Shown piece after piece: positions 1-61,235 of a stretch of 64,000 bases of DNA (position 1 is the stretch's first letter; each line of letters begins with the position of its first letter). The notes below the pieces were generated by a model. That model did not search any database, was not told where the DNA came from, and was given only the letters and a program-made list of their open reading frames with translations. A program made the position numbers and the translations under genes. The DNA is from Takakia lepidozioides (lineage: Eukaryota; Plantae; Bryophyta): positions 3,906,001 to 3,970,000 of the forward strand of contig CM060732.1 of NCBI GenBank assembly GCA_030704615.1, read 5' to 3'.

Positions 1-734
1 GAGGTTTATCGAAACAATATCGAGCCTGAAGTTATCGGCACCGAATATAGCCATCGAATGCTTCATGACACATAACCCAATCTTAAAGTCGGTGCAGACT
101 ATAATGTACCCACAATAGTGCCATGTCTTACGCTATAGTCGGTGCTGACTATAGAGAGAATGTTCTACTGAAGTGAGCTGCACAGATGGGACACTATGTT
201 ATAGTCGGTGCAGACTATAATCCACAATAGTGGCATTCCAACCGAGGCCGGCGTTTGGAGGAATAATTTGCTACATGTTTTGTTATAGTCAGTGCAGACT
301 ATAAGTTGTGGACATAAGTGCTCTACGTTACGGTATCTTCGGTGCAAACTGTACAAGTTCTGCTGCAGTGAACCTCATGTGATCAAAGAAAATGTGTTAA
401 CATTAAGGATCAATGTTAAAATCTAATGTCATAGTGGGTGTAGACTATAAGGTAAAACAGTGCCATTGCAACGCTATAGTCGGTGCAGACTACAGTGGAA
501 TAAGGTCTCCTCACATGTGTTGTGCTTTATGTCACCGAAGCGACTATGAAAGCAAGGTTTCGCTCATATGAGCAGATCTACATCCGCTCACGGATTCTTT
601 TTGAAGTAGAATAAACAAAGTTCTCAATGGAACCGTAATAGTCGGTACAAACTATGACAGTTTCACTTTTGCTCACGTGAGCATAACCCGAAAAAACTGG
701 GCGTACGAAGATATTGCATGCAACAATTGAATGC

Positions 735-2893
735 TTACATTGCGGACATATGCCCCAAGTTGATAGTAACGGTATGTCCACCACGATAGCCAGCTCTCCA
801 ACGCGGGAACATCTTCATCTCAAGCGGCACCAGAAGACGACCACCAAGCTCGGATGGCCAGAAAATTGAAACCTCCGCTTCCGCCTCAGTATTTGACGCT
901 CTCCACTTCGTACAAAGCTGTACATGTGCATATTGGAGGTTTTCGGAGATGTATTTTTTGGTCCACTTCTGGAGGCTTTGACCCCAGTGGAACCCACATG
1001 TTCTCTCACGATCGGGCATGGGTTCCCCGCCTCCATACACTTCGCGAACAGCAGCCCAATTTGCATTTGCATTGTCGGCCATGAATCCCCGAAATTGCGG
1101 TTGCCCCTTCCCTGCTCGCAGCATCTGTTCATTGATGGATTCCCACACGATCTTCTGTGATTCTGCATCCTCACATTTCATTTCGCAAATTGCGATCAAC
1201 ATGAGCTTCCGAAAATTCGGATGGTACACGTGACAAGCCATTGTACTCCATCCGTGTATCCGCTTCACGTTGTCGAACATAATCCAGCTACTTCCCAGCT
1301 CCCCCCCCGGACGGATCATGTCCACCAGATGGACTCCACAGCCCTTTCCAACAATTGACATCTTGAATATGAAACATCTCTCATCCACACTCCCTTGGCC
1401 TGGGAAGCGGCTCCCATGGAAATAGTCGTACCCGCTCCACTTTTTCATTGTCAGTAAAGCTTCTACTTCACTCCCAAGCCCCATTTGTGCTTTTGTCTTC
1501 TTTGTCTCGTAACGAACACCACATTTGCCCACGGCACCGACCTCCTCCATGAGCGCCTCGAATTGCTCATCATCGAGCTTCCATCTCTCGGTTGCACCTG
1601 GCAATAACACCTTCTCCATGGCAATGGACTGAGCAGCAGACATTTGCACCGATTTTGGCCTTGCAGACGGTGACCTATGGATTTCTTCAGCAAGTGCAGA
1701 TTTGGCTTTGGCGGCAGCTTCCCGGCATGCTCCAGGTGCAGATGGATGTGAATGAATGCCAACATGCACGGCTGCTCTGGTCATCGTTGGTGGTCCTATC
1801 ACGTAGAACATTTTGGCACGGCAGGTGTGCATATATGTAGGTGGATGGTTGCAGTGAGAACATAGGAAGGTGTTCCAGGGCACCTGGCTTTGCGGTTTGA
1901 ACTGACCATCGTAATGCCCCATCCAATGAATCTCATTGTGGCTGCCCTCCCTGAGGAAGAATGGGCACGTTCCTCGGACACATCTCAGCGCACCAACACA
2001 ATGTACATACCTACAATGACATTTGAAGTCAGTGCACAAAGTGCAGAAATTGCACTATGGAAGTCGGCCACGACTACAACTGCACAATGGACAGTGAGCA
2101 GGAACAAAATACCACCTCACCTGACTGCGCCGCCTTTTGTGCCAATTATAGGAAGCTTTAAGTTCGTTGTCTTCGTGGTGGCCCATGGATTGCCATCGTA
2201 CTTGCGGTCCATGCCTTCGAGCTGACCTGCTGGGGATGTGTTTGATGTCGGTGGGAGCTCATACACGACATCACCATCATCGATCCTTGGCAAGCACTTC
2301 ACCTACTTCACTTCTACTTCTTCAAAGTTTATCTTCCCTAAGTGGGATTTGGAATCAAGATGGAGAAGCTTAAGGATATCCAATATGGATGGGCCCGAGT
2401 GTCCATAAGTGGCCTTCTTGCCAACAAACTTGGGGCGCGGCACCTTTTTAGGAGGTGAGGCAGATGCAGCCAAATTGGGTTCCACCCTTCCACTGCTGGA
2501 TTTCAGAACGACACAATCCTCTGACTCCCCGCTAGACAGCTCAATGCTTTCCGTTTTTGGTTGTCAGGCCTGAGGAATAGAAGCAACAGTTGCAGGTTCA
2601 CGTGTCGTGGAATTCCTATCCAAAGTAGCAAGGACACCGAACACTCTATATCGCACTTCACCTGTAAAAGGCAAAACCCAGGATTTGCGGTCATTATCTC
2701 AAATTGGATCCAAAATGCGGTATGTTGTGCCGGAACCAGCATTGATCTCCTCCTCTTCAACAACCAAAGAGAATGGGTCGATACCAAATCTGCCCCGAAT
2801 TACTTTGTCCTTTAGAAATACATGTTGTCCCTCTGCCATCACCTTGTTGTCGTCCGTGCCAGGTGGGCAATTCAGCAGCACGAAGGGATCCAT
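735..2893 (-). pseudogene. MULE (Mutator-like) DDE transposase with Cys/His-rich WRKY/GCM-like N-terminal region; introns, stops and frameshifts
   Basis: ORF 735-2039 has IMFDNVKR...FRGFMADNANANWAAVREVY...RTCGFHWGQ (D..D..CxxH MULE core), preceded by CVGALRCVRGTCPF..CSHC..C..HVGIHSHP. A GT-AG intron at about 2011-2120 joins AVR|YVHC. The 5' exons (2303-2485, 2699-2893) are tentative. Confidence 0.8.
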
Positions 2894-4713
2894 GATCGCC
2901 TGCTTCACTATGCCGCCACAGTGCTTTCGAACACGCGCGGGTGTGGTACAATGCAAAAATGCACATAGCATGTGGACACGGAGACCCCAGTCCTACAAGC
3001 ATCAGCAAGCATGCATGGAATCTATGCAACGGACTAACGAACTGTACTATCAACGGTCTAAAATTTATGAAAATCTATCATCCGTTTGTGTTTAATACTA
3101 TTTTCCATCCGCCTCCATCCATTCACGATTGTGGTGGCAACGATCGGCGCGGATTTCAAGTACACGAGGCACACCCTATCGGCCACTTTCCCGCCACCAT
3201 AGAAATGTTTTCCATTGCATTACCTTTGCGGAAGGAGAATAAAGTTTATGAATAGAAACAGAATGCGAGGCATTACACGTAGAATAAAGACGTCTTCATT
3301 ATCATATACCCTCACATCCTCGCGACGGGTTCTAATGAAACTGTGGTCGGCACCGACTTCTTCCAATTCGAAATAGAAATCGTCCGATGGCACCGGATTG
3401 GAATACCAATAGAAATGCACTACTTCAAGTCGTTAACGACTTCAAGGAAACCCTAGGATATTCATTGCAAATGTTGGACAACAAGGCAGTTTCTCGGGTA
3501 TGAGGTTGTCGTGCTCGGAGCCTACATCTGCCTCCTCTTTTGAAAGTCGGCAACTACTACACTCAAATAAGAAATAAACCCACACTGTTGGTGGCTTATG
3601 GGGCCGCATTGGGTGATTATCGGCACCGACTTCACTGAAGCCACGTCTCCATCTGTGCATCCGCCAACGGAAGTCGGCACCGACTATCCCGTGCAATCAT
3701 GAGAGCCATTGGATAATTGGGATGTACTCGTTGCGGAGGAATCATATTTTCTTATAATATAATTTGCCTATTGTATGACCAATTCCGTTGTTTCCTTGAC
3801 CTCATATGCTTATAATCGGCACCGACCATCACTAATGGCCGTTGGTCCATTGGAGTGAGCCCATAATATGCCAAATCCCACTGTTGGAAGGTGGTCTTAT
3901 GCTATTACTCGGCATATAGTTCCACTGTTGGGCGTAAGAACTATGGGATTTGCCTACAATATGCCCATTTACCACATTTCAATGAGAGGATGTGCACATG
4001 TAGTTGGCACCAACCTTCACTGTTAGCCCTTCAAAAGAGATCAATTTCCATATAATTTGATGAAGCCCGCACATTCCACGATCTCATATACTTTTAGTCG
4101 GCACCGACCTTTACTGTTGCCCTATGAAAAAGTGCAAAATCCATTGAATATGTTAAATTCCACATATTCCATGACCTCATTCGCCCAATTGCGAAAGTTT
4201 GCATTACCTTATGTGCTCCATTCGGTACCGTCCTTCAATTTCAACAGTTGGAGAGAGTACTACGTGTTCACCCCTTTTGAAAATCCATACGGAATCAGTC
4301 AATTACATTGACATGTAGTCGGTGACGACTACATGTGTTTCGGCATTAAAAGAGCAATGTGTGGCATGCAAATTTACAAAATGCATGGAAAGCCGATGGG
4401 ATTGTCGCTATCCCATACGCATTGTCCGTGAAGGAATGACATAACATTGGTTTTTCGGAGTAATCTGAAGCCGGGATACTGTTTAAAATGAATGGAGGAG
4501 TTGGCAGGGGATGAGAATGAGACGCCTCTTTTCCTTCCGTCAGTGACCTCATGAAGACGTACGGGGATGACAGGTGGATAGGTGGGACCCACTGCATCCA
4601 TTATTGCAGCCCGCAGTGGCGAGTGGTTCTGACCACGGGGAATTTGAAAGGGCTTTGTTGTTGTCTCTAAGGTCTCATTCTCTTCAACAACAGACTCATC
4701 CTTCCGACCTCGT

Positions 4714-5298
4714 TTGCAACGATGCCTTACTTCCGGAACCACGACAAGTGCCGGAGGCGTGGATCATGCAAACTATACTGCCACACCGGGGGATATCGTC
4801 ATTTGGCACACAGTTTGCACTGACGATAGTGGGGCCGAGCGCGAAACATTGTCTGCTTTTGAGTATTTGCCAAGGCAATATGCTTTCGAGCGGGGTGACG
4901 ATCTTGGTCTCTCCAATCCGTGGCTCTTGCACATCATTGATTCAAATTTCCCCATCTACGGCCGGCAGCCGGAGAGAATGCGCAGCGCTATGCTTTGGCG
5001 GTGGAACTGCTGCCAGTGGGCGTGGGTAGAGTCCATCGGTGCCACGTATACTCCTACAAGTGTACGGTTCTCTTCCCCATCATATGGGGACATTCGCATT
5101 GGATTGGAGGACGAAACGCACGGGCACTCCGGGTCCACAGTTAAACTTTCCATATTTGATGGTGGTTTCATTGACGGGCACGACATTGTGGTGAAGATCA
5201 ATAGGGGCCGAAGAACGGCTGCAATCCTTTTTACGTGGAGAAGCCCGTTGACTCATGAGCTTGTGTTTAGGCCAGTCGAAGTGCCGTTGACTTCGTAA
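4714..5298 (+). CDS. Hypothetical cargo ORF (194 codons; true start uncertain)
   Basis: Open frame with protein-like composition inside the palindrome-marked element; no recognised motif. Confidence 0.35.
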   Translation: MQRCLTSGTTTSAGGVDHANYTATPGDIVIWHTVCTDDSGAERETLSAFEYLPRQYAFERGDDLGLSNPWLLHIIDSNFPIYGRQPERMRSAMLWRWNCCQWAWVESIGATYTPTSVRFSSPSYGDIRIGLEDETHGHSGSTVKLSIFDGGFIDGHDIVVKINRGRRTAAILFTWRSPLTHELVFRPVEVPLTS

Positions 5299-6126
5299 GT
5301 TGTATTTAAAAGGGAAAACGCATTGGATTTGCATGCACCCTTAGTACAGTATGAGTGCTTCATTTGGAATGCATACATATGAATAAAAACCCCATTGTGT
5401 GCGAACTTGTGTGGAATGTGCATCCTTCCTTCTCAAAATGCACAACTCGCCATGGCGTTTCGGGTTGGGAGTGTCGGTGGATTATGGAAGGGGTAGGTAG
5501 GCTGTAGTGGGGGCCCATTCTACTAAGCACTGCCACCGTAGCATTTGAGAAACATTACCTTCTATGCAAAGCGCCAACAAATTAAATTCGCATAGACATA
5601 ATCGGCGCCGACTATGGAGTCCATGAGACCCAAATCGGTGGGTGTAGGGCAGACGCTCGCGGACCGGATTGTCCAATAAGTGGCCGCACTCAATTATCGG
5701 CAATAGGAAACAAAAATGTTAACGGAAATCCAAAAGTGGTTGTTTTCGAGACGATGAGAGACAAATACTACAACATTTGTACAGTAAACAGAGGAATATA
5801 TGAATATACAAATTAAGTTTCGAGGCTATGGAGTTGGTCTAGGGATGAAAAGTTATGGCAGATGATGGATGGATGACATTTGTTGGGATGCAAAATTTAA
5901 ACTTCAACACAATGAGAGGTACCTCGCGTGGAGCACCTAAACCATAATGGGAGAGGGCACGTGTCTCCCAACCACGGGCAATTTTTTAAAGGAATCCATT
6001 GAGGGCCACGGAGGATTAGTGCGCCCTTTTCGTTTACTCCACAGTATCCGCTGGCACACTCCCTTTTTTGCTCTTCCCGACCCTCCGCCTTCGTGTTCCG
6101 CTGCCGAGCTTCGTCTCCTGCTTCTG

Positions 6127-9100
6127 ATGGAGCACGTTCAGGATGAGGAGGATGACTTTGTCCTCGGAACGGCCACTCGGAGCAAGGTGCTGCGCACTCG
6201 CACCGTTGTCTCGCAACAGAGCACGGAGAGCAGACCTCCAAGGAAGGTGGGAAACTTTGGAAGAAAGCCGCCGCATCACATGAGGGAGAGATGGTGTCCA
6301 CAGCCGCCACGATGTCCGGGGATCCCGTGCCTGTATCCCCCATATGTGCAAGCAGCACCTCCGCAGGTCAAGCGCAGCGCGTTCCGCCTTCCCCCATTTC
6401 AACAACCGCGGCCTGGCCAGGTCTAGCAACAAGCGCCCAGGCAGGTGGTAACTCCAATCCCGTGCACGAGAATGTGGTGGCAGACGTTGTCTTCACTGCA
6501 AACATGCGCAAGCAAGCACTTTTGTCATTGACAACTAGTGCAATGAACCACACTATGAGCTCCATTGCGCACTTGCTGAAGAGTGGGGCCCCTCCATGAA
6601 TCCCATTGTGTAGGATGAAGCCCCTCCCGGCTGTGCGAATGGCCGAGCGACCCGGCATCAATAACAGCTGAATCTCTACTTTGAGGCAGATCGCTATAAC
6701 GACGCCCTCGCCTCATTGTTGCTTTCAATAAATGACGACAGTGGGCAAGCTCAGGACATACAACCGACAAACCGTGGAAATTGGTCACCACATTGACAAG
6801 CAGCGGATGCTCCATTTGAGGATGACATAAGGAACACATAGTGGGAGTTCCTTTCGAACAAATGGCTACACATTTACGACGGCAATCACAGGTGGTACGC
6901 GTGGATGGAGGTCATTTCGGAGCAGCATGCTGACGATGCAAGTTGGCACTACCGTGTGAACGCAAAAATTCTCGATGTGAGGAGTTCCGATCTGGGCCTC
7001 ATACAGCGTGCAATGAACAGAATGAATGTGTAAGTATGTCCGTGCATTTGTGCTCACATGAGCAAAGTTGAAATTTGTGCATGAGCATGGGTCACCGTGT
7101 ATGGAATATCTCCATATATATGCTTCCAAAGTTATAGTCGGGAACGACTACAACTGTTTCCAAAGGGACGGGAGGGCACTTGTGCATCGCGGAATTGAGA
7201 AATAACGGTGGTTTCTAAGAGAGCATTGTTGAAGACCACAAAATGTTTTTCTTCTGTTAATCGTGTGTCATTTCCACACCCCCTTAAACAAGCACATAGT
7301 TGTCAATAACAGCAGAACGCATTCCCCATGCAAGAGTACCAGGTTATAGTCGGGACCGACTAGACTGCGTACAATTTTTACCTCATAAACTATTTTTTAA
7401 GCCCATGTTCATTTGAAATGGTATAGTTGTTCCCGACTACACGAATTTGGAGGGGTGCAACACTATATAAAGTTCTCTTTGTTGATGCCCGACTATGTAG
7501 GAGTAGTTTCATGTCATAGTCGTTGCCGACTATGACAAGTTGTCGTGTGCTTTGTGCAGCGTAACAGATCGTGGGAACGTCTCGTCCAAGCTCCCTCACA
7601 AGCTCTTTTACTTCCAAAAATGCGCTACGACACCTGTCGAGCAATACGAATCATCACTTCCACCAGAAGTGTACGAGAAGTGCTTGAACTAGCGGGATGG
7701 GAATTGGATGACGATACCACGAGATGCTCTCATAGAGTACATGGGTCAAGAAGGATTCCGTAGAATCAGAAATGCCTGCTTGGAAGCCCATGCGCACTTG
7801 CCCGCAACGGCGGAAACCACTGAGCTAATTAGGAAGGCCATTGCAACTGAATTTCAAGTGCATAGGACGAAGTGGTACACCAAAATTGCAAAGTATTCGT
7901 CTATCTGTGACCCAACTTTGGGTACTGAGTTCTTCTTGGAGATAACCGCGCATTATAAGAAATTGGTCGTCAACCAGAAGCCCGAGATGACATTAGAGAG
8001 GTTACAAATGTTGGCCACCAGTGAGGTTACAGCTGCAGAGAAGGTTGCATGGTTGAAGATATGGAATTTCGACCCTGGGATCAGGAAAGATGTCAAATTT
8101 CCGAAGGCGCCAACAGATGTGGTGTTCGGCTTATGGTTGGACAAGATGACATGGTGGTTCCAGGTAAGCAGCTACACATACATCATGACGTTTTATATAT
8201 TCATTTGTGAGACCCATTCTCATTTCGAAACTCCGGATGCAGCAAAAGGAGGAAGCTCAGCGGCAGTTGGAGTGGCTCATTCAAAAGGGTTTCTTGCAGC
8301 TACCAACCCGGGAGGAAGCACCATCTGTAAGGTCTCTGTCAGATTGGGTGGACGATTTCCGCATAAAGTATTGGAGGGAATTGTTTTGGAGCGAGATGAA
8401 GGACGGCCCTGCTCGAAGCTGGCAGATTACCGAGCAGCCAGGGGGGACTCTACCGGCCCGTCGAATTGTTTACAGGTTTGAATAGTTATCACAGTTCCTT
8501 CAATTTGCATTTGTGCAAATGTTTAAGTCATGGTGGAGTGCAGAGGTTCCGAACATTAACATGTGTCTCGTACAATTTTGTAGGTACCTCAATTTCTACT
8601 TGCTCGCCAACAAGCACATAAAGTGTATGTCGGCCATGGTCACACAGTGGGCTAGTCAGCGGGGTGACTGCACAATGTACAATGGAAGGCAGTTGGGCCT
8701 ATACGTGAAAGCATCACATCTACCGTGCTTTTGGTGGCTCGACTTGCCGCCGAATTTTACTCCTGACGAGGAGGCTGAATTGTACAAGAAGTACACGAAT
8801 CATGAACTGCCGGCACCAACAAATATGGAGCCCTTGACGGAGGAAGGTGCCGAGGAGGCTGCCGATGTTGTTGCAGCCCAAATAGAAGAAGCGAACACGG
8901 CTCTACAGGCAGCAGTCGCAACGAAAAAACAGAGGAAAAGGAAGCAAAAACCCAAAAAAAACACCGCCACAGTACAAGTCACCCCCCCAGGCACAAGGCG
9001 TGGAGGCAACACGGGTATGGAGGGTGTTGATGAGACAGACGGTGCAAACAGGCATGAGAACCCAGCTTACGAACATTTTACCCAAGCCTTGCATAATTTC

Positions 9101-9690
9101 CAAGTGGAGCGGAGGAATAGGTCTGCTCGCACGTTAACATTCGGGGCAGGAGGCAATGAGGGTAGGGTGCTGCGGCTTGCATGTGTGCTGCTGTATGAAG
9201 CAGTAGCCTTGCAAGAGGGGGTTGCAAACACTGAAGTGAAATGCTTAAAGTGCGATTGGTTTCAATTAGTCATCCGCAGATTGGCCACAAAAGGTTCGTC
9301 CAATAGTTGGCCGGAGCCGAGGGGGGAAATTGACGCGTTTCTTGAAAGGCACGTACCAATTGACCCTTCACACCGTTTGCCAAGGGGGATGAAAGCAGGG
9401 GCGGATTTGGTTATAATTGACCTCCCCGATGGGCAAGTTGTCAAAGGTACTGGCCGAGACAATGTTGTTGCAAGTTAGAACAACAAGAGCAAGGATACAG
9501 TTCCTCATGCATTGGCACTGGGATCCTCCATATTGAAAGACAAAGGGTGCCTTGTGATGTTCTGCAAAGGGGATGCAAAGACAGAAATTGAAGTCCGGAG
9601 ATGCGTTGGGCCGGTCGGGCCATTCAATTTTTTTTAAAAAAAATGGACTTGCCTCAATCGAATTCCATTGCAAAGTGGAGATGTTGGCGA
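6127..9690 (+). pseudogene. ParB/Srx-like domain protein, copy 1 (multi-exon), with a possible C-terminal methyltransferase-like segment
   Basis: Manual translation: IPLCRMKPLPAVR...WLHIYDGNHRWYAWMEVI (IYDGNHR at 6872-6892)...RAMNRMN, then an intron at about 7030-7559, then ORFs 7708-8163, 8230-8475 and 8584-9478. Several in-frame stops. Clearly homologous to 23127-25796. Confidence 0.75.
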
Positions 9691-10208
9691 ACCACAGGTG
9701 GGTTTACCATGTTCAATTGAAACGCATGCCATGAAGTTTGTACTTAAAATGTTTGCAAAGGATTAAAATGATAAGTGTAAGCCCACGGTATGTCTTTCAT
9801 AGAACACCACCTTCCAACAGTCGCCGAGTAATAGTCAGTAACGACTATTACAGTGTGAGTATGGAATATGTATCAGATTAAGATCTATCAAGTATCAGGT
9901 CGAAGCCATGGTGTCTCTAGTCTGCTCTACAGAACAACTCTATAGCTTGCATGAATCAAGCATCAACAGTTCGTGTCTCCTCCTCCACTGTGCTCTCCAT
10001 TCCTCAGCTCCAGATCGTCCTTCTCTCCCCGATGACCAAGTCGTGATGCAAGAAGTGTCATCTCCCCATTGCTACTCTGCATTTTCTACTTGCAAGCTGT
10101 TCTAACTGCCTAACTAACTAACTGTCATCCAGACATAATACACGTTCCCTCTGCCAATATTGTTCCCATACTGTTGTTCCCTGCCATGGTAACCGTTCCC
10201 TGCGAATG

Positions 10209-10460
10209 CTGTGACGGGTTGTGCCAAACTGTGTCGGCTGTGACTGGATGTGTCGGGCTATGTAAAGCCGTGTAAAGCTATGTCGGGCTGTGATAGACTG
10301 TGATAGGCTGTGTAAAGCTGTGATAGGCTGTGTAAGGCTGTGACAAGCTGTGTCAGGCTGTGTCAGCTGTGATAGACTGTGATAGGTTGTATAAGGTTGT
10401 GACAAGCTGTGTCAGGCTGTGTAAGGCTGTGTAAAGCTATGACTGACTGTGTAAACCTGT
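10209..10460. repeat. 10-bp-unit minisatellite, (GGCTGTGTAA/GGCTGTGATA)-like
   Basis: About 25 tandem degenerate ctgtg-containing decamers. Confidence 0.9.
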
Positions 10461-10581
10461 CTACCACCCCTAAGGCCTGTGTCGGTCTAAGTCTATCATC
10501 CGCGCAAAAATTAAGGGTACCCCACAGAACCCATAAAACTGTCTAGGTCCCAGACAGCCTTCTAACAGTTAGAAAGGAACC

Positions 10582-13792: not shown

Positions 13793-16700
13793 GATGTCAT
13801 TCTGAACATTTCCCTAGTGGACATGTATGCCAAATGTGGGTGCATCGAGGATGCCAAGGGAGTATTCAACACTATCGCTGAATGAGATGTGGTGTTATGG
13901 AGTGCAATGCTTGCGGGGTATGCACAGCAGGGGCGCGAGATGGAGGCTTTGGAGACGTATGAGTAAATGATGGGGGAAGGAGTGAAGCCCGACCACATAA
14001 CGTTTGTGTGCGTTTGCAGTGCGTGTGCGAGCCTGGCAGCCCTGAAAAAAGGGAAAGAGATCCATGGTGACATCATCAAATCTGCAATTGTACCAATGTC
14101 ATCCTAAACACTGCTCTGGTGGACATGTATGCCAAATGTGGGAGCATTGAGGATGCTCTACGATCCACTCCCAAAACCAAATTTGTCAAGGAGATATTCA
14201 ATTCCCAGATGCCCCACTTTGAATGGATCGGGCTACTCGCCTTGACTTTGAATTGATGGCCTCCCCCATGTCACTGACTGGAAACATGTTCAAGGAAGTT
14301 TTCTGCCGCACTTCATGGCCCTGTGCACATGTCATTTAAAAGTACTGGCATCCTCTAATTTTTAGTAGTACAAGAAAGTAGGTTGTTTCGGGATCTGTCT
14401 ATTTTTTGAAATGTGCGAAGCTTTGGTGGTTATAGCGTGGTGCGAGAGGCCATGGCTACTCAGTTGCCCGCTGGTGCTGTCGCGGAGCAGTTTAAGGGCA
14501 GAAATGAGGTTCTCTGGATGGGTTGGTCAAACCCTCCCTGGTGGTGACTCTCACTGGTGGTTTTGCAAGAGGTCCATGCATGTGACATCGTCAAACCTAG
14601 ATTTGTACCAGATGTCATCCTGAACACTACCCTGCTGGACATGTATGTCAAATGTGAGTGCATAGAGGATGTAAAGGGAGTGTTCGACAGTATGGCTGAA
14701 AGAAATGTGGTGTCGTGGAGTGCGATGATTGCAGGATATGCACAGCAAGGGGCGGGATGGAGGCTTTGGAGACCTATGAGCAATTGATGTGCGAAAGGGT
14801 GAAGCCCAACCACATCACATTTGTTTGCGTTTGCAATGCTTGTGCAAGCCTGGCAGCCCTGGAAAGGTGCAATGAGGTCCATGGTGACATCGTCAAAGCT
14901 AGATTTGTACCAGATGTCATCCTGATCACTGCCTTGCTGGACCTGTATGTCAAATGTGAGTGCATCGAGGATGCAAAGGGAGTGTTCGACAGGATGACTG
15001 AACAAAATGTGGTGTCGTGCAATTCAATGATCGCAAGATATGCCCAGCATGTTGTCATAGGGAGGTCCTGCAACTATTTGAAGGAATGTAAAAGAACGGC
15101 TTGAAGCCGGACAGTATCACCTTTATATGTGGTCTCTCTGGGTAGATGGTCAACTGAATGCAGCAGTTGTAGCGGCACAGTTGATGAAATCAGGCACCTC
15201 ATCCATGGCCACAACTTTTGAAAGAGGATCAAGAGAGGGAGTCCACAATACCTCTTCTGGCACTTCTGGGCATGTGAAGATACTTCGTGCGACAGGCAGA
15301 CTGGCAGAGGCTCTACAGACTATAAACCAAGGAGGCATTTCAGCAGATTCAGATACGTATGCTTATCTCTTGCTTAAGTGCATCAAGATGGGAGGTCTGG
15401 AAGCTGGAAAGCAGGTGCACACTCACATTATCCAAAGTGGATTCACGTCAATTTTTTTTCTACTCAACTCCCTTGTCAACATGTATGTTAAGTGTGGGAG
15501 CATCATGGATGCTCATCAAGTGTTCAACAGAATGCCTCAACGATGTTTGATCATGTGGAACATAATGTTGGCAGGATTTACCAAGCACGGGTGTGGTAGG
15601 AATGCTTTGGAGACCTATGAGCAAATGCTGCGCGAAAGGGTGAAGCCCAACCACATCACATTTGTTTGTGTTTACAATGTGTGTGCAAGCCGGGGAGCTC
15701 TGGAAAAGGGGAAAGAGGTCCATGGCGACATCGTCAAAGCTGGAATTGTACCAAATGTCATTCTGCAAACTGCTCTGGTGGACATGTATGCCAAATGTGG
15801 GTGCATTAAGGATGCGAAGGGAGTTTTCAACACTATGGCTGAACGAGATGTGGTGCCATTGGACGTGATGCTTGCAGGGTATGCACAGCAAGAACGTGAT
15901 ATGGAGGATTTGGAGACTTACGAACAAATGATGGGAGAAGGGGTGAAGCCCAACCACATCACGTTTGGGTGCGTTTGCAATGCGTGTGCAAGCTTGGGAG
16001 AGCTGGAATTGTACCAGATTTCATTCTGAACAATACCCTGGTGGACATGTTTGCAAAATGTGGGTGCATCTAGGACGCAATGGGAGGGTTCAACACTATG
16101 GCTGAATAAGATGTGGCGTCGTGCAAGCCTGGCAGCCCTAGAGAAGGGCAAAGAGGTGCATGGGGATATCGTCAAAGCTGGAATTATACCAAATGTCATT
16201 CTAAACACTGCCCTGGCAGCTCTGGAAAAGGGGAAAGAAGTCCATGGCGACATCTTCAGAGCATGGTTGTCATAGGGAGGTCCTGCAACTATTTGAATGA
16301 ATGCAAAAGAACGGCTTGAAGCAGTATGTGTTCTCTCTGCTGCAGCCACACTGGCCTTCTGAATGAAGGTAGACGCTACTTCGATTCCCTGATTCAAGAT
16401 CATGGTGTCACTCCGACAATATAGCACTTTGGCTGCATGTTGGACCTTCTTGGACGTGCGGGACAACTGGATGAGGCAGTGGACCTGATTAATAAAATGC
16501 CAATCAATCCAGATGTTGTGGTGTGGAAGGCCTTGTTTAGTGCCTGCAGAATCCATGACAATGTAGAGATGGCTCAACGTGCAGCAACATCTATCCTCAA
16601 GTGGAATGAACAGGATTCCGTGACTTATGTTGCTATCAAACATCTATACTGCAGCTGGCAGATGGGTTGATACTGTAAAGGTGAGAAGAATGATGAAGGT

Positions 16701-21700: not shown

Positions 21701-22535
21701 TCCAGAGGGACTCCAGTATTTCCATATCCTCCGAGGTGATGAGTATAGAGGGCAGACGACCCTTTCTGAAAATGATGGGGGTAATACATGAAGCCTGCGG
21801 AGCGTCAAATACCTCCAGAGCTGAACAACCTTTCAAATTGAGCCCAGGGAAGGAGCAAGTAGCAAGATCAATTTTAGCAAATGTAGGATTATTGGCAATT
21901 CCTGAGATGACAGTGGGGTTGGCGTGGATGGATGGTAGAACCAGAGTCGGTGTTGGAGATGGAGATTGGTCCATGATTTGGCTTTGCCCTTGATGATGGC
22001 TTTGTTATGCTGTTGGAGATGATTCGCTTCCATGAACTTGGGGTCCACATGTGTAGATTGTTTCCTGCAAACTGCCTGAGGAGGTTTAAATTGCAGGGAG
22101 TTTGAGAAGACTAGAATGCAAATGGCCACTCAGCAGATCTCTCAGCTCATTGACCAGACCACCAATATCGAACCCAACAACCCCAATGAAATGGCCAACA
22201 TGGCATCCACTCATTTTAGGAAACTCTTCCAGAGTGATAGCCTTGGAATGACCACAAACCCCCTTCAGGAATCTTGTTTGCAGCACACACCTACCATCCT
22301 TAGCCCGCAACAGGCCTCTGTCCTCGAAGGAGAGTCCACGGACATGGAATTGGAAGAGGCTCTCTCTAAGTTGCACAATCACAAATCCCCCGGTATTGAT
22401 GGCATATCAGTGAATTCTACAAGGCACTTTGGCCAGAGATTTCACATGACCTTACCTCCATGGCCAACCATCTCTTTCTAATGGGTCAAATGCCTCCCTC
22501 GATGTCGTAGGGGGTCATAACTCTAATATTCAAAA
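18779..22535 (+). mobile_element. L1-clade LINE, decayed and 3'-truncated, with an internal inversion at 19702-22081
   Basis: ORF1 start (KGRGFF motif) on +. AP endonuclease motifs (NIRGLG, FLQEHK, VNIYAPN, GDFN, RLDK, DHAPI) on -. The RT lead-in (ELEEALSKLHNHKSPGIDG) resumes on + at about 22090. Confidence 0.85.
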
Positions 22536-22587
22536 ATTGGAACTTCGAATCTTCATGTGTTTTTAGCAGGCTTGAAATAGCAGCTTC

Positions 22588-25079
22588 AAACAGTGTGCGG
22601 TACCGCACACTGTTTCAGCCCCTTTGTATTTTATTCACCCAACTCTGTCTATCAGGCTTCAATCAACCTGTAAGCAATGAAGAGTCACTTTGGGGTACAG
22701 TTTTTTAAACCCCTGTGAAGTGTTCTTTTTTTGTTTGGAATGAACCCATTCAGTTGTCTCTCTTGCTTCAAACAGAGACAAATGAAAGCAAGAAACAATG
22801 TGCGGCACCGCACACTGTTTCTTGCCCCTCTCTTCATTTGGGGGTTGAGAAATGTGAACCATGCCCTGTTCCTCAAATTTCCATGAAGGTGAAATGGCAG
22901 CACGGAACAGTGTGCGGTGCCGCACATTGTTTGTGCCCCTGTACTATGATATGTTTTGATGTAATAGGAAGCCAACTTGAAACTTTTTGAAACTTTGAAC
23001 CACATTTGAAACTTTGTGAATAGATGGAAAAAGGTATGAGTTCCAAGCTCTGTACAGTGTTCGGCACCGCACATTGTTTCTGGCCCCCTCTTATGTCAGT
23101 TTGAATGTGCATCCCTGCAGGAGAAAATGCAAAGGGTGGAGGATGAGAACCCTTCAGTGCAGGAAAAGGAGATCATTGGTGATGTGGACGATGAGTTCTA
23201 TGAAAGCAAAGCCGCGAAGATGCTGGGGGGGTCAGAAGGTAAATTCGCAGCTTGTGGTGCAAAGTATGCTTGCCCCGGATGGGAGGTTGAAGATTCCCCT
23301 GTGTTGGTTTCCATGCCCGTCGTTCATCCACCCCTCATCAAGGACATCCAGAAGCTGGAGGCGGAGTTTGTTCATGGGTATTTGGATGGATCTGCAGTTT
23401 TTTACGTTTCTACTAGGGATTCCAGAGGCAAGGAGCTCCTGGTGGATGAGTGAATCGTGAACTCTTGGGATCCCATTTCCTTTGAACTTCTTCTCTGCAG
23501 GAAACCTTCGACGCAAGCATTCTCAGGGAAGATGTTTCACGTATGGGATGGCAACCACCGGTTGCTTGCATGGATGGCTGTCATTGGGAGGCTGCACTCA
23601 TAGGAGGAAGAGTGGCATTACTGTGTTCGAACAATGGTGTTGGATTGTGACGGGAACATTATGGGGCTTCTGACGACAATGAATGATGTGAATAGGTTGG
23701 TTTCTCATTCTACATGTTCCGGTTGTGGTTCCGTGGTTCTTTGCTTCCAATCCTCTGTTGTCGGTTCTTGAATTTCATTCTGACTTTCACACATCAATCT
23801 GCAGAGGGACGGAGACATCCCATGTGAAAACGAGTCTAGTTCATACTCTGTACATGATACAGAGGATCGGTCAGATACCATTGAGCAACTTCAAGACCAT
23901 CCTTTCAGCAGAGACGTACAAGAAGTGCGAGAGCTCCAAGACTTCATAAACATGGTACTCGTTGACCCGTGAGGCTTTCATGGAGTATATGTACGCGGTG
24001 AGATACGTCTTCCATCATTTGGCCTTTGGGTATTCCTGCTTCGAGATCTTTGTTTCTGTTTGTTTCCCTTGCACTTGTGTTAATGCATCTGTTGTGTATT
24101 CTCTTGCAGCAAGACATTGCGGATGCAGGACAGCGCGGCAAACTGGAATACTACAGCTCTACCCCTGAAGAGTGAAGGACAACAAAGGGGGTTGAGAGTC
24201 ACATCAAGCAAGAGATGACCACCACAAGAAAAAATATTATGAGTGCTTTTATGAAGCAGTTGAGAATTGCCGACCCATCCTTCGGACCACAGTTCCTTCA
24301 AGAGGTGAAAAACCATTTCAACAAGCCAGGAAAGCCCAAGATGGCCCAGGAGAAGTTGCACATGTTGTCTATCGCCGTTGTGTCTTTAGAACAGAAAGTG
24401 AAGTGGCTACAAATATAGAACTCCGATCCCACTGTTAGGGACACCCACATGTTCCCCAGGCCGGAGAAAGAGAAGAAGACCCAGCGTGTCATTCCAGTCA
24501 GTGACAATATGATGGACACATGGCTTCACAAGGCCATTTACTGGAGCCAGGTATGATGTCCTTTGCTGTGTCACTTTCTTTTCGCTTTTCTGTGGTTCTC
24601 TTTCCATGTTCCATGGGCTGTGATTGTTTTCTGGTTCATTCTTGCATTGGAATTGTTTTGCAGTTGGAGGAAAGGGCCCAGTTTGTTCTACATACGCAAC
24701 TGGCTGACTATGGCATCACCATGACAACACCGAGGTCTCATTCCAAGCATACATGCGGAAATGGAGAGCCACGATGTGGCAATCTTGTTTCTTCAGGGAG
24801 TTCAACAAAGAGGGTGGCATCAGTCGAACAAATGAGCTTGACCAGCAAGAGAAAGGAGAGGAAGCCTGGAAACGATGCCTTTACATGTGCAAAATTGACT
24901 ATGCTTATTTGTTTTGCAAAGACACACTCTCCTCCATCCAACCTGATTTGTGCTGGCTCATATGAGTGTGCGGTGCCACACACTTATTTGTTCTGTCCGT
25001 GTGTAGTAACACCGGTGTGCACACCCTGGGCCTTTCAGGCTATTTTGTGTGCGGTGATTACAGTGTGTGGTGCCGCATA
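22588..25079. repeat. Dispersed 16-bp palindrome family B, consensus TGTGCGG-N2-CCGCACA
   Basis: Cores at 22594 (inside a perfect 28-bp palindrome, 22588-22615), 22799, 22911, 23058, 24967 and 25064. Degenerate copies near 25048 and 26179. Confidence 0.9.
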
Positions 25080-25796
25080 CTCTTTTTGGGGGTCTCAGTG
25101 ACGTGGTAGAAAAGCTAGGAGACAATAGTTGCATTGCATAATGAGGCTGTCTCTATGCGTGCAGGTATATAAAGTATGTTCTCATGGTTGAGAACTGCTT
25201 GGACAAACATCCTGATTTCGTGGACCTGTGGCTTGTTCCTGTTGGCAACCAGACCATGTTCACTACAAGGATCTTGCAGGACTGGGGCCCAGACCATTTC
25301 TACATGTGGTTGGTATTTGGATTGCCCTGTTTCTGAGACCCCAGCGCAGGAGGTGTCTTTGAGGAGAGAGAATGAGCATGTAGCAGCCACTGCCGCAGCT
25401 GCCGACCTCGAGATTCATGATAGAAATTTGAGGACACTTGCAGAGAAGGAGCCTCCCGCTCAGGATACCCCGGGTAAAGGTAGAAAGGGAAAGGGAAAGG
25501 ATGTTGCTGTTGGTGGGGGGAAAGGAAGGGGTAAGGGGAAGGAAGCGCAGGGGCAGGTAGGTGGGCAGGGAAGTGTTGCAGAACAGCCCCATCCACGGAT
25601 AGAGCTCAATATGGTGGAAGAGCGAGAGGTCATGTGGTGGGGTGTGGCAAGGAGGTACAACGAAGCGGGGCTCCTAGCCAACAACAACAACCATTCCAAT
25701 GTGCTCAAGGCAACAAAGGGGCTCAGACGAAGCCCAGGGAAGGTCAGAGAGGATCTCAAATGCAGAGGTATCACAACGCCAAATCCATGGTTTTAA
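23127..25796 (+). pseudogene. ParB/Srx-like domain protein, copy 2 (multi-exon)
   Basis: IPLC..VSMPVVHPPLIKDIQKLEAEFVHGYLDGSAVFYVS...MFHVWDGNHRLLAWMAVI (VWDGNHR at 23541-23561). Downstream DPSFGPQF, KPKMAQEKLHML..EQKVKWLQI, WLHKAIYWSQ and CGWYLDCP align with copy 1. GT-AG introns; stops and frameshifts. Confidence 0.75.
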
Positions 25797-26399
25797 TAAC
25801 TCTTTTTGTTTAAGAGTCATGAATTTCATGACTAAACCATGATTCAAGGTCTTTGGGAATCAAAAGGGTCATGTATATGACCAAACGTTCAGTTGGAATA
25901 CTGGTCGACATCGTTTGACTGGAATAGAGTCATGTTCGTGGTCTCACATTATACGACAGTAAAGACCTCTGTTGTGCATCATACTTTCTCACTGTGGATG
26001 TGAATAGCAATTGCGGTGTCTTTATTGAAAATTGTTGGGATTTCTTGAGTCTGTAAGAAATGGAGTTCAAGTGTTCTTCATATTGTGGGTATAGCTTCAG
26101 GGACAGTTAATTGAATAACGTTGCTGCAATATATAGCTCCCATGCTTGAAGAACCGAATACTTCGTGCCCACAGTGCAATTACGGCGCCGCAATAAGCCC
26201 GTTTGACGCTGGTGGTGACAAAAAAAATTTGAACACTTCTACTATGTAACAGGCCAATGTCAAAGTGTAACTGCACGCAAATGGTGTAAATGCTGCATAC
26301 TTTTGCTGCAAATAGAGTAGTTGCAGGGTAAGGCGAACCAAAATCGGCAGATGCTACCTTCCATGGAAGTTCATTAATCCTATTAATTAAGCTCAACTT

Positions 26400-31511: not shown

Positions 31512-31945
31512 CAATGTGGAGATCATTGAACGTGCGGCAACATCTATCCTCAAGTGGGATGAACATGATGTCGCGCCTTATGTGTTGCTATCAAACATCT
31601 ATGTTGCAGCTGGCAGGTGGGATGATACTGCAAAGGTGGGAAGAATGATGAAGGTCAAAGGGGTTAAAAAGGAGTCAGGTCGCTGCTACATTGAGGTTGG
31701 CAACAAGGTGCACATATTCGTTGTAAATGACAAGTTGCATCCCAGAATTAAGGAAATCCTTGCTGAGCTGAGAAGATTGTCTGGGCAGGTGAAGGAGGCG
31801 GGGTATGTGCCTGACACGCGCTTTGTATTGCATGATGTGGGGGAGGAAGAAAGGGAATTTTCTCTTTGCCACCACAGTGTGAAGCTGGCCATTGGTTCTG
31901 GGCTAGTCAACATGACCCCTAGGATGCCTCTCCGTCTCATCAAGT
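31512..31945 (+). pseudogene. PPR E+/DYW fragment, third copy
   Basis: YVLLSNIYVAAGRWDD..KKESGRCYIEV..AGYVPDTRFVLHDV..LCHHSVKLAI, truncated before CxxC. Confidence 0.9.
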
Positions 31946-32068
31946 TCTTGTTGAGATTCTGGCCAGTTGTAGAACTAGCCATAGCATAGTGGCTGTGATT
32001 CTTTGCATCATCTTTATCTTTTGATAGAAGAGCCGCCTATTGAATACTGGGTGGGGGACACGAGGGAG

Positions 32069-57904: not shown

Positions 57905-60960
<3,056 letters not shown>

Positions 60961-61235
60961 AAAAAATTGAGGCCAAAGAAAGGCTATTCCAACGGTCATA
61001 TGTCCCCTATAGCCGTTCAAGGCGGGCAGCGATTTTTAGAATGTCATTTTGTCATCGTGGCAAAATGGTGGCAAAAATGTGGCAAAAATGTTCCACGATG
61101 TCGGTTCCACCGTGACAAATTGTTCCGTGGGAAGCGTTAGGTTCTCGTCCCTCCCTTTCTCGTGCGCTTCTTTCCCCCAGCCCTTCTCGCACGCCGGCTT
61201 CCATCGGGCTCCAATGCTGCAGGCGTTTCCTGCAC

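Follow-up and report, generated by a model that had tools for sequence, protein, structure and literature searches.

A decayed Mutator-like transposon copy of Takakia lepidozioides with a ParB/Srx-like accessory gene and an element-specific palindrome array

The first 10 kb of the window (the whole 64-kb stretch of Takakia lepidozioides DNA that was analysed) harbour, at approximately 32-9847, a truncated, decayed member of a Mutator-like family of DNA transposons that inhabits seed-free land plants. The element contains two genes in head-to-head orientation, a MULE-like transposase gene on the minus strand and a spliced accessory gene on the plus strand, accompanied by an array of palindromic sites (Table 1).

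Table 1. Positions of the features identified in the window
Feature	Position	Strand	Remarks
Left palindrome cluster	32..654	.	Seven sites (86, 136, 202, 286, 432, 477, 639) and a weak one at 32; variant ATAGTCGGTGCAGACTATA
MULE-like transposase gene remnant	691..2839	-	ORF 735-2039 plus upstream pieces; homology to relatives
Gap or putative 66-nt GT-AG intron	2055..2120	-	Between two transposase pieces; contains site 2061-2076
Central array between the divergent genes	3344..5614	.	Eight sites at ≤2 mismatches (3344, 3427, 3544, 3671, 3813, 4095, 4316, 5599); variant AGTCGGCACCGACT
Accessory gene, first exon (decayed)	6127..7029	+	ParB/Srx-like domain at 6600-7029
Intron (GTAAGT...CAG)	7030..7559	+	Four sites (7135, 7347, 7424, 7517); based on donor, acceptor and homology of the next exon
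Second exon, conserved helical middle region	7560..8163	+	Ends at the WW.Q|GT donor common to all relatives
Third exon (approximate start)	8207..8476	+	Homologous, by eye, to the L001 exon at 6595-6828 (…RRIVYR|GT)
Fourth exon	8584..9565	+	Runs into the first ~130 residues of a beta-class methylase-like domain (9392-9565)
Last site	9832..9847	.	TAGTCAGTAACGACTA

The transposase remnant aligns with residues ~10-713 of relatives of 717-734 residues, and the conserved C-terminal ~450 residues, with their SWIM-like part, are absent from the window. Pfam searches with the window ORF and six full-length relatives gave no match. Based on language-model features, the ten best named neighbours all carry PF10551 MULE, ZSWIM or SWIM domains (scores ≤0.92), and the C-terminal part of one relative has a weak SWIM match (E 0.05). 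The N-terminal part of the transposase includes a Cys/His zinc-finger region in which C272, C278, C283, H354 and H360 are invariant. A 122-nt gap separates the two homologous pieces and contains the palindrome 2061-2076, which the preliminary description of this DNA had placed in a transposase intron; a GT-AG intron is plausible there, but the frame is not kept in the decayed copy. The window begins inside or beside the element, whose ends are undefined. The earlier notion of a 10-kb element finds no demonstrable ends, as a search between both ends of the stretch for terminal inverted repeats, which in Mutator-like elements are accompanied by 8-11-bp target-site duplications, revealed none beyond the palindrome itself. 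An apparent long inverted repeat in the fern locus proved to consist of two Gypsy reverse-transcriptase fragments.

The product of the accessory gene comprises, in this order, an acidic N-terminus, a ParB/Srx-fold domain (VRP ... DGNHR), a helical middle region and a beta-class N6/N4 methylase-like domain. Its first exon retains the motifs IPLCR..VR (6600-6668) and DGNHR (6878-6892), and the ParB-like domain is broken by a frameshift near 6665 and by stops at 6794-6796 and 6839-6841. The segment LHIYDGNHRWYAW, encoded at 6866-6904 (plus strand) and previously regarded as a separate exon missed by the ORF track, is the end of this larger first exon. The second exon has an in-frame stop at 7690-7692. 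In the fourth exon, the motif IV equivalent DLPD (9419-9430) is followed by a stop at 9476-9478, the motif I side of the domain is missing, and alignment with the methylase-like domain of relatives extends over its first ~60 residues. The accessory gene is real, yet the window copy is a pseudogene, with one frameshift and at least four in-frame stops, and truncation has affected both the methylase-like domain and the transposase next to it. Because it is a pseudogene it cannot encode anything, so that for this copy the proposal of an encoded loader is not supported; being dead, it could serve solely as a passive target.

The palindromes are element-specific. The exact pattern TAGTCG-N4-CGACTA occurs four times in the 64-kb window (4316, 7135, 7347 and 7517). 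The 'more than 20 copies' initially reported therefore apply to the loose pattern but not to the exact one: with ≤2 mismatches allowed, the window has 22 matches, of which 21 fall within 86-9847, whereas shuffled sequences had 0.58 on average and never more than 3. The other 54 kb contain a single match (0.6 expected by chance). The central array includes a further site at 3 mismatches (3617), and local duplication contributed to the left cluster, which adjoins the transposase remnant at the remnant's truncated 3' end. Before the last site, positions 9566-9831 have no homology to relatives. An improved consensus reads (A)TAGTCGG-NN-CCGACTA(T), 16-20 bp in length, with three regional variants. 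As first observed, the sites always lie outside coding sequence, with none of the 21 overlapping homology- or ORF-supported coding sequence (50% of the stretch), and four do fall in the accessory-gene intron; the others occupy the intergenic region, the putative transposase intron and one flank. When all sites were shifted together around the stretch, just 54 of 9815 circular shifts likewise gave zero coding overlap.

The ParB/Srx domain was modelled on the intact exon of the relative L002, which aligns with window positions 6842-7027 at 33% identity. With this model (pLDDT 86.5), a wide structural search returned ParB/Srx superfamily proteins as its eight best chains (Z 5.5-8.1), namely KorB (8.1), PadC (8.0), pNOB8 ParB-N and Arabidopsis Srx (both 6.8), SerK, Atu1540, human Srx and SbnI, with Srx and SerK at 6.6-6.8 and unrelated proteins from Z ≤3.8. 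Foldseek gave Noc, ParB, Srx and KorB as best matches, and shape neighbours in the ESM Atlas were ParB_N, DndB, DUF1015 and full ParB proteins. The superfamily signature, a P-R strand motif near the start followed by hh-DG-x-HR / GxxR, is present, with IPLCR..VR and DGNHR kept in the window, and R20 (of VRP), G100, N101, H102 and R103 are invariant in alignment A3 of the family. The predicted structure and these motifs support a ParB/Srx fold for the DGNHR domain.

Structure comparison thus bore out the fold proposed in the preliminary description, but profile detection of ParB failed: none of 102 family members matched a model of the ParB clan in Pfam (PF02195 or relatives such as DndB, DUF262 and Srx) at E≤0.01, and sequence profiles built on 9 and on 102 sequences retrieved no ParB chain from the PDB. 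The hh-DG-x-HR motif is not specific to CTP-dependent ParB clamps: DGxHR is common to the entire ParB/Srx superfamily, which includes sulfiredoxin, the SerK/SbnI kinases, DndB and nucleases. At the position of the CTP-pocket motif the family has DGNHR, whereas canonical ParB proteins have GERR (box II) and ENLQR (box III). No ParB-type helix-turn-helix was found with Pfam HTH_ParB or in the fold model of the exon after the ParB/Srx domain, a helical model of low confidence (pLDDT 68.9) with no fold match. The family gave no Pfam match to the C-terminal ParB dimerization domain (ParB_C), and neither the window nor L001-L005 showed a ParA-like ORF.

The initial account of the gene as ParB-like alone overlooked the beta-class methylase-like domain, which in about 20 loci follows the ParB exon on the same strand at a distance of 2-3.5 kb. 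PF01555 matches the corresponding L002 exon at 30.6 bits (cut-off 26.7; profile positions 1-216 of 221) and P0165 at 29.5 bits. Motif IV precedes motif I, which is the beta-class order. Neither the catalytic motif IV, (D/N/S)-P-P-(Y/F/W), nor a regular AdoMet loop is present. A conserved D-x-P-E/D-N/G loop replaces (D/N/S)PP(Y/F), in the variants DIPD, DLPD (window), DCPE, DVPR, DIPE and DYPE, which lack the aromatic residue; DVPF is found in the fern protein. In the motif I loop, SVGTG, AMTG or ASTG stands in place of the expected F-x-G-x-G. An unusual motif IV and a weak AdoMet loop speak against methyl transfer of the ordinary kind. The DNA-recognition region of this domain is an equally good candidate for reading the palindromes.

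The family is large, with 930 clusters at E≤1e-3 among 1.84 billion representatives, including an annotated fern member (Adiantum nelumboides MCO5582296.1). A homologous transposase adjoins the accessory gene in L001, L002, L004, L005, L007, L012, L034, L047, L053, L058, L081 and L085, in most of these 12 loci head-to-head as in the window, and relatives from ferns and metagenomes repeat the layout. Arrays located upstream of the ParB exon consist of TGTGCGG-NN-CCGCACA in window copy 2 (six sites), TGTCGG-NN-CCGACA in L004 (seven), TGTGCGCTAGCGCACA in L002 (five), AGCCCTGCGTTGACGCAGGGCT in the fern locus L005 (eight) and GGAGGTGCC-N6-GGCACCTCC in L007 (17); L028 and L031 have arrays too. Nearly always, these lineage-specific arrays lie upstream of the ParB exon at a distance of ≤3 kb. 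In the 12 loci with a family of at least three sites, 50 sites lie within 4 kb upstream of that exon and five within 4 kb downstream. Both arms of the palindrome change together between lineages, preserving dyad symmetry. In about half of the longer metagenome loci, which are AT-rich and decayed, the detector used revealed no clear palindrome family. Independent relatives share the combination of gene and array, but each has a different palindrome; the gene-plus-array design is real and widespread.

With a little more confidence than doubt, we propose that in intact copies of this MULE-like element the array would be the landing site of a dimeric element-encoded protein, most likely the accessory protein, which we favour over the transposase. 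As no helix-turn-helix was found, we infer the identity of the palindrome reader: the half-sites may be read by the methylase-like recognition region or by the middle region of the accessory protein, and the ParB/Srx domain would supply nucleotide-dependent self-association. By settling on the shared promoter and the introns, the accessory protein would enable the element to recognize its own copies and could determine how they are expressed or which chromatin state they adopt; autoregulation, protection against silencing or a non-canonical DNA mark could be the means. The original idea of a sequence-specific loader acting on its own element agrees with the element-specific sites and recurrent layout, but the methylase-like domain and the transposase zinc finger are further candidate binders. 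The left cluster (86-654), which occupies the place of transposase coding sequence in relatives, counts against our explanation.

We consider it unlikely that the palindromes are bound by the transposase, with its N-terminal Cys/His (WRKY/GCM1-like) zinc finger acting as a dimer for transpososome assembly or promoter autoregulation, and with the ParB-like gene as cargo of unrelated role. The zinc-finger domain is a live alternative binder because the arrays sit in the shared promoter region; the common layout puts them immediately upstream of both genes, and synteny therefore does not separate the two candidates. The Cys/His region is conserved, and the cluster at 86-654 resembles subterminal repeat clusters, which are known in hAT, CACTA and Mutator elements. 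However, the arrays of relatives are central, between the genes and in accessory introns, rather than at recognizable ends, and we know of no WRKY/GCM1-type domain that reads 16-28-bp dyads. Furthermore, in published algal cases inverted-repeat arrays accompany a ParB-like gene in elements whose transposases are unrelated. In red algae, Plavaka, Zisupton and Fanzor-encoding elements have a ParB-like accessory gene next to such arrays, and a brown-algal Sola1 element has a ParB-like and methylase gene (10.1101/2025.02.11.637652, PMC12477816), so the pairing follows the accessory gene across transposase superfamilies.

It is rather improbable that the palindromes are host or structural cis elements, for example parts of promoters or enhancers recognized by a host factor, or hairpins feeding small-RNA pathways, with no specific link to either element protein. 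Their location in promoter and intron DNA would suit such roles, as would the CGG-NN-CCG core found in many lineages, with its CG and CHG methylation contexts. Nevertheless, the linkage of array and accessory gene persists across very distant hosts, and the flanks differ by lineage, even between two copies in one genome, while the dyad is kept, so that a co-evolving element-encoded reader fits better than a single host factor. Least probable is a true ParB-type CTP-dependent sliding clamp that loads at the palindromes and spreads to compact the element or synapse its ends: KorB, ParB and Noc, which are CTP-dependent clamps, rank among the best structural matches, and the sites are dispersed like the palindromic KorB operators or parS, but the motif is the DGxHR common to Srx, SerK, SbnI and DndB rather than GERR, HTH_ParB and the ParB C-terminal domain were not found, and Srx and SerK reach Z scores only a little lower than KorB and PadC.

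The self-binding idea and the VANC analogy were already in print in 2025 for algal transposons (10.1101/2025.02.11.637652; PMC12477816). By its features, namely a transposon-borne ParB-like N-terminal domain, a DNA-modifying domain and arrays beside the gene, the Takakia family can be likened to this algal class. The accessory protein of Sola1-1_Ec32 from Ectocarpus, proposed by its authors to bind and epigenetically modify its own element, combines ParB-like and DNA methyltransferase domains, and green-algal cases are cited there from Iyer, Abhiman & Aravind 2011 (PMC12477816). Like the Takakia gene, it is transposon-borne, is transcribed opposite to the transposase and has a ParB-like domain at the N-terminus fused to an N4/N6 methylase domain. 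It differs by its algal host and Sola1 transposase, as the Takakia family belongs to land plants and MULE-like elements and, compared by description, has the D-x-P-E/D loop and documented palindrome arrays. PAG3 of red-algal Plavaka elements (Bostrychia) is similarly a transposon accessory protein whose N-terminal domain is ParB-like, with inverted-repeat arrays adjoining the gene across families, and its authors put forward the same self-binding hypothesis and VANDAL analogy, citing VANC/VANDAL (10.1101/2025.02.11.637652). Unlike the Takakia protein, PAG3 carries a 2OG-oxygenase domain, with the methylase on a separate gene (PAG2), and is associated with another transposase superfamily; its ParB assignment is a weak HHpred match (E 0.29), compared with a confident fold model here.

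The accessory protein resembles VANC in being a MULE product proposed to recognize short motifs that its own element carries outside coding sequence, with protein and motifs both diversifying between families. VANC proteins of Arabidopsis VANDAL MULEs have an experimentally shown anti-silencing function and short, tandem, non-palindromic motifs, and are unrelated to the accessory protein in sequence or fold. Bacterial ParB/parS, Noc/NBS and KorB/OB share with the plant family the ParB/Srx N-terminal fold, KorB being the best match, and 16-bp-class palindromes, some in or beside their own gene; KorB acts as a regulator at many operators on one mobile element. The plant family differs from them by its DGNHR motif, its methylase-like fusion and its eukaryotic spliced gene, and the helix-turn-helix, C-terminal dimerization domain and ParA partner of the bacterial family were not found in it. 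In bacterial and phage ParB_N + N6_N4_Mtase fusion proteins, a ParB-type N-terminus is followed by a beta-class amino-methylase, the same two-domain order as in the accessory protein, which differs by ~400 helical residues between the domains, introns and an altered catalytic motif. Such fusions are the probable evolutionary source of the accessory gene.

The palindrome TAGTCG-N4-CGACTA had been reported in the preliminary description in more than 20 copies along the element (approximately 32-9847). This number holds for the degenerate pattern, with 21 copies at up to two mismatches, but not for the exact one, of which the window has four copies (at 4316, 7135, 7347 and 7517). At up to two mismatches, 21 of the 22 matches in the 64 kb lie within 86-9847, compared with a mean of 0.58 and a maximum of 3 in dinucleotide-preserving shuffles, confirming the clustering; with three mismatches allowed, there are 24 matches inside the stretch and 6 outside. 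The avoidance of coding DNA proposed earlier is also real, as all 21 sites fall outside coding sequence even though the latter makes up half of the stretch; when the sites were shifted jointly, only 54 of 9815 circular shifts were equally free of overlap. The improved consensus is (A)TAGTCGG-NN-CCGACTA(T), with three regional variants. Transitions account for 11 of the 36 mismatches, and CpG decay is not predominant. The left cluster occupies exactly the position of the C-terminal ~450 transposase codons of the relatives, and all its copies have one arm change in common (CAGACTA). It may have arisen by rearrangement, by local amplification or from a partial neighbouring copy past the window start. 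We located no element ends for the stretch, which is directly followed by a tandem array of ~26 units of a 10-bp GGCTGTGTNN-like sequence (10226-10492).

Features of the element in the window, and palindromes of its second copy and of relative loci
Feature	Coordinates	Strand	Details
Left-cluster palindrome variant	86-654		ATAGTCGGTGCAGACTATA
Transposase remnant	691-2839	minus	first ~700 residues, by homology
Between-gene palindrome variant	3344-5599		AGTCGGCACCGACT
ParB-like domain of accessory gene	6600-7029	plus	family profile, one DNA piece
Accessory-gene intron	7030-7559	plus	GTAAGT donor, CAG acceptor
Intronic palindrome variant	7135-7532		TAGTCGGGAMCGACTA or TAGTCGTTGCCGACTA
Following exon of accessory gene	7560-8163	plus	stop at 7690
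Methylase motif IV	9419-9430		DLPD
Second copy, ParB domain	23040-23770		41% identical, diverged; palindrome TGTGCGG-NN-CCGCACA
Relative locus L002, palindrome			TGTGCGCTAGCGCACA; 5 sites
Relative locus L004, palindrome			TGTCGG-NN-CCGACA; 7 sites
Fern locus, palindrome			AGCCCTGCGTTGACGCAGGGCT; 8 sites, only within 2 kb between transposase start and ParB exon
Relative locus L007, palindrome			GGAGGTGCC-N6-GGCACCTCC; 17 sites

The accessory gene in the window is a pseudogene. A frameshift near 6665 and stops at 6794 and 6839 interrupt its ParB-like domain, and the family profile showed that the supposed motif exon, absent from the ORF track, is actually the tail of this decayed first exon. The intron described within the gene is genuine, in view of its splice sites and of the homology of the downstream sequence to the corresponding exon of a relative. 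The exon that follows it in the window (7560-8163) terminates at a WW.Q/GT donor kept in 22 of 22 aligned copies, and the last exon, with a stop at 9476, is truncated ~130 residues into a methylase-like domain. Pfam yielded zero matches for all exons and ORFs of the window. Homology searches were run exon by exon, each used singly, and word-indexed searches retrieved only one relative for the middle exon and two for the methylase exon.

The transposase remnant is 36-38% identical to proteins of 590-735 residues from metagenome and genome assemblies. Pfam recognized neither the remnant nor its relatives, and a PDB sequence-profile search with the transposase gave nothing meaningful. Using language-model features, all of its ten best named neighbours were found to harbour MULE, ZSWIM or SWIM domains. 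A Cys/His region is invariant in the family, and the relatives possess an additional C-terminal part of ~450 residues with a weak SWIM match, absent from the window.

The window as a whole is a transposable-element nest. It also contains, in 39483-46822 and 59849-61140, two LINE-type reverse-transcriptase ORF sets in opposite orientations together with a Ty3/Gypsy integrase ORF, and PPR-type ORFs at 15127-16029 and 31516-31989.

Pfam searches for ParB gave no ParB-clan match for the window exon, the intact relatives or any of the 102 family members, and PDB sequence-profile searches with the domain gave no ParB match. We modelled the intact 203-residue exon of L002 with AlphaFold2, using a 102-row alignment from 930 matching clusters (pLDDT 86.5), and aligned the model exhaustively with 48,161 PDB representatives. 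The top eight chains all belong to the ParB/Srx superfamily, namely KorB (Z 8.1), PadC (8.0), pNOB8 ParB-N (6.8), Arabidopsis sulfiredoxin (6.8), SerK (6.6), Atu1540 (5.9), human Srx (5.6) and SbnI (5.5), and the remainder have Z scores of at most 3.8. The best Foldseek matches were Noc, ParB, Srx and KorB, with probabilities up to 0.98 and E-values of only 0.045-1, and the shape neighbours in the ESM Atlas were ParB_N, DndB, DUF1015 and full ParB proteins. Invariant residues in the domain alignment include a VRP arginine and G-N-H-R, which we take to be the QPR and GxxR nucleotide-pocket motifs of ParB/Srx. The model of this intact relative thus supports the assignment of the accessory domain to the ParB/Srx fold superfamily, in line with the preliminary description.

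The CTP-dependent ParB clamp class, also evoked there, is not supported, because the motif is of the DGxHR type, common to kinases, sulfiredoxin and DndB, and because no helix-turn-helix, ParB C-terminal domain or ParA was found. Pfam gave no match to a ParB C-terminal domain, neither the window nor L001-L005 showed a ParA-like ORF, and folding of the middle exon gave a low-confidence helical model (pLDDT 68.9, pTM 0.37) with zero fold matches. When domain residues 55-203 of the L002 ParB exon were compared by language-model features, the closest named family was DUF3723 (score 0.95, 171 shared features), an accessory gene conserved in the fungal Starship giant transposons, with ParB_N and the phage family DUF6551 next; DUF3723 and the plant domain gave no match by sequence or by shape.

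In the relatives, the accessory gene extends into a beta-class N6/N4 DNA-methylase domain, a feature absent from the preliminary description. The exon of one relative covers nearly the full PF01555 profile (30.6 bits for a cut-off of 26.7), and at ~20 loci an iterated search located the domain on the strand of the ParB exon, 2-3.5 kb downstream of it. Its motif IV reads D-x-P-E/D/R-N/G, without the aromatic residue of (D/N/S)PP(Y/F), and the AdoMet loop is likewise degenerate. As the altered motif IV is common to distant members, it is a family trait rather than the result of decay. These residues suggest that the domain is a pseudo-enzyme or has a changed activity.

A homologous transposase adjoins the accessory gene in every long relative examined, mostly head-to-head as in the window. 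This is also the case in the fern Adiantum nelumboides, where the accessory gene is annotated 'hypothetical protein'. An 800-bp inverted repeat at the fern locus, considered as Mutator TIRs, was rejected after translation revealed two inverted Gypsy reverse-transcriptase fragments. The window harbours a second copy (22594-25800), also decayed (stops at 23451 and 23601), with its own palindromes at 22594, 22799, 22911, 23058, 24967 and 25064: four lie just upstream and two in a downstream non-coding stretch that is probably an intron. On the upstream side, the copy is truncated by a LINE-type reverse-transcriptase fragment (KSPGIDGI, ~22300-22560), and it has no adjoining transposase.

Each lineage has its own palindrome. 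Several have CGG-NN-CCG in common at the centre and differ in the flanks, and both arms change together between lineages, as expected of a co-evolving dimeric reader. At the 12 loci with a palindrome family of at least three sites, the 4 kb upstream of the ParB exon contain 50 sites and the 4 kb downstream contain 5, for ~42 and 29 kb of available sequence, respectively. The generic detector was noisy in AT-rich loci and was then tightened, so that non-detection at a locus does not amount to absence.

At L002, a protein-kinase-like ORF (5602-7110, minus strand) separates the accessory gene from the palindrome array, and an F-box/Kelch-like ORF (14709-15938, plus strand) follows the transposase; both may represent captured host genes, located within the element of this relative or next to it. 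Other palindrome families, GGTATCGTCGAGTCGACGATACC and TATCGGCG-N3-CGCCGATA, were observed at two further loci (L001, 15271-18098; L003, 16509-20874 and 1826-2533). They are close to ORFs with NIF (CTD-phosphatase-like) and DUF7869 matches, with no ParB domain of the family nearby, and are probably part of another type of element.

ParB-like accessory genes have been described in algae under unrelated transposases, in Plavaka, Zisupton, Fanzor-encoding elements and Sola1 (PMC12477816; 10.1101/2025.02.11.637652). The accessory protein of the Ectocarpus transposon has 1104 residues and combines ParB-like and N4/N6-methylase domains (PMC12477816), and in Bostrychia inverted-repeat arrays adjoin a ParB-like accessory gene, for which an analogy with VANDAL was drawn (10.1101/2025.02.11.637652). 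The copy in the window is a dead member of this already described kind of system. Our literature search found no description of such a ParB-like/palindrome system in land plants.

Beyond the gene architecture, fold, arrays, linkage and array positions documented here, we lean towards the accessory protein as the palindrome binder, because in the algal cases inverted-repeat arrays accompany ParB-like genes under unrelated transposases and because the arrays studied here occupy central and intronic positions rather than terminal ones. Binding by the transposase is a serious, if less probable, alternative, as the array lies in the promoter region common to both genes. A host or structural role of the palindromes is less likely still, and we consider it quite improbable that the accessory protein, with its DGxHR motif, is a true CTP sliding clamp.

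With the accessory protein as binder, we tentatively propose, as a possible scenario, that an ancient self-recognition module, co-evolving with its target, is present in the Mutator-like elements of land plants. Within the bidirectional promoter and the introns of its own element, the ParB/Srx and pseudo-methylase protein would bind the palindromes of its lineage as a dimer, and the loaded protein would keep the copy expressed or shielded from silencing. To our knowledge, very few eukaryotic transposons apart from VANDAL, with VANC, encode a recogniser of their own DNA. If ParB/Srx and methylase-like proteins bind the palindromes, they would represent a second, far more widespread self-recognition system of bacterial ancestry, spanning red, brown and green algae, ferns, mosses and this genome, whose binding specificity could be read directly from the palindrome of each family. 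Such a system would also help annotate element families. The copy described here, being dead, is of value as one more documented member and, together with the second copy, as one of two diverged copies in the window whose palindromes are related yet distinct. As a lead only, a ParB/Srx-type module may underlie other unexplained transposon accessory genes, such as DUF3723 of the fungal Starships. In eukaryotes, the proposed plant module would correspond to the control of plasmids by KorB-type proteins.
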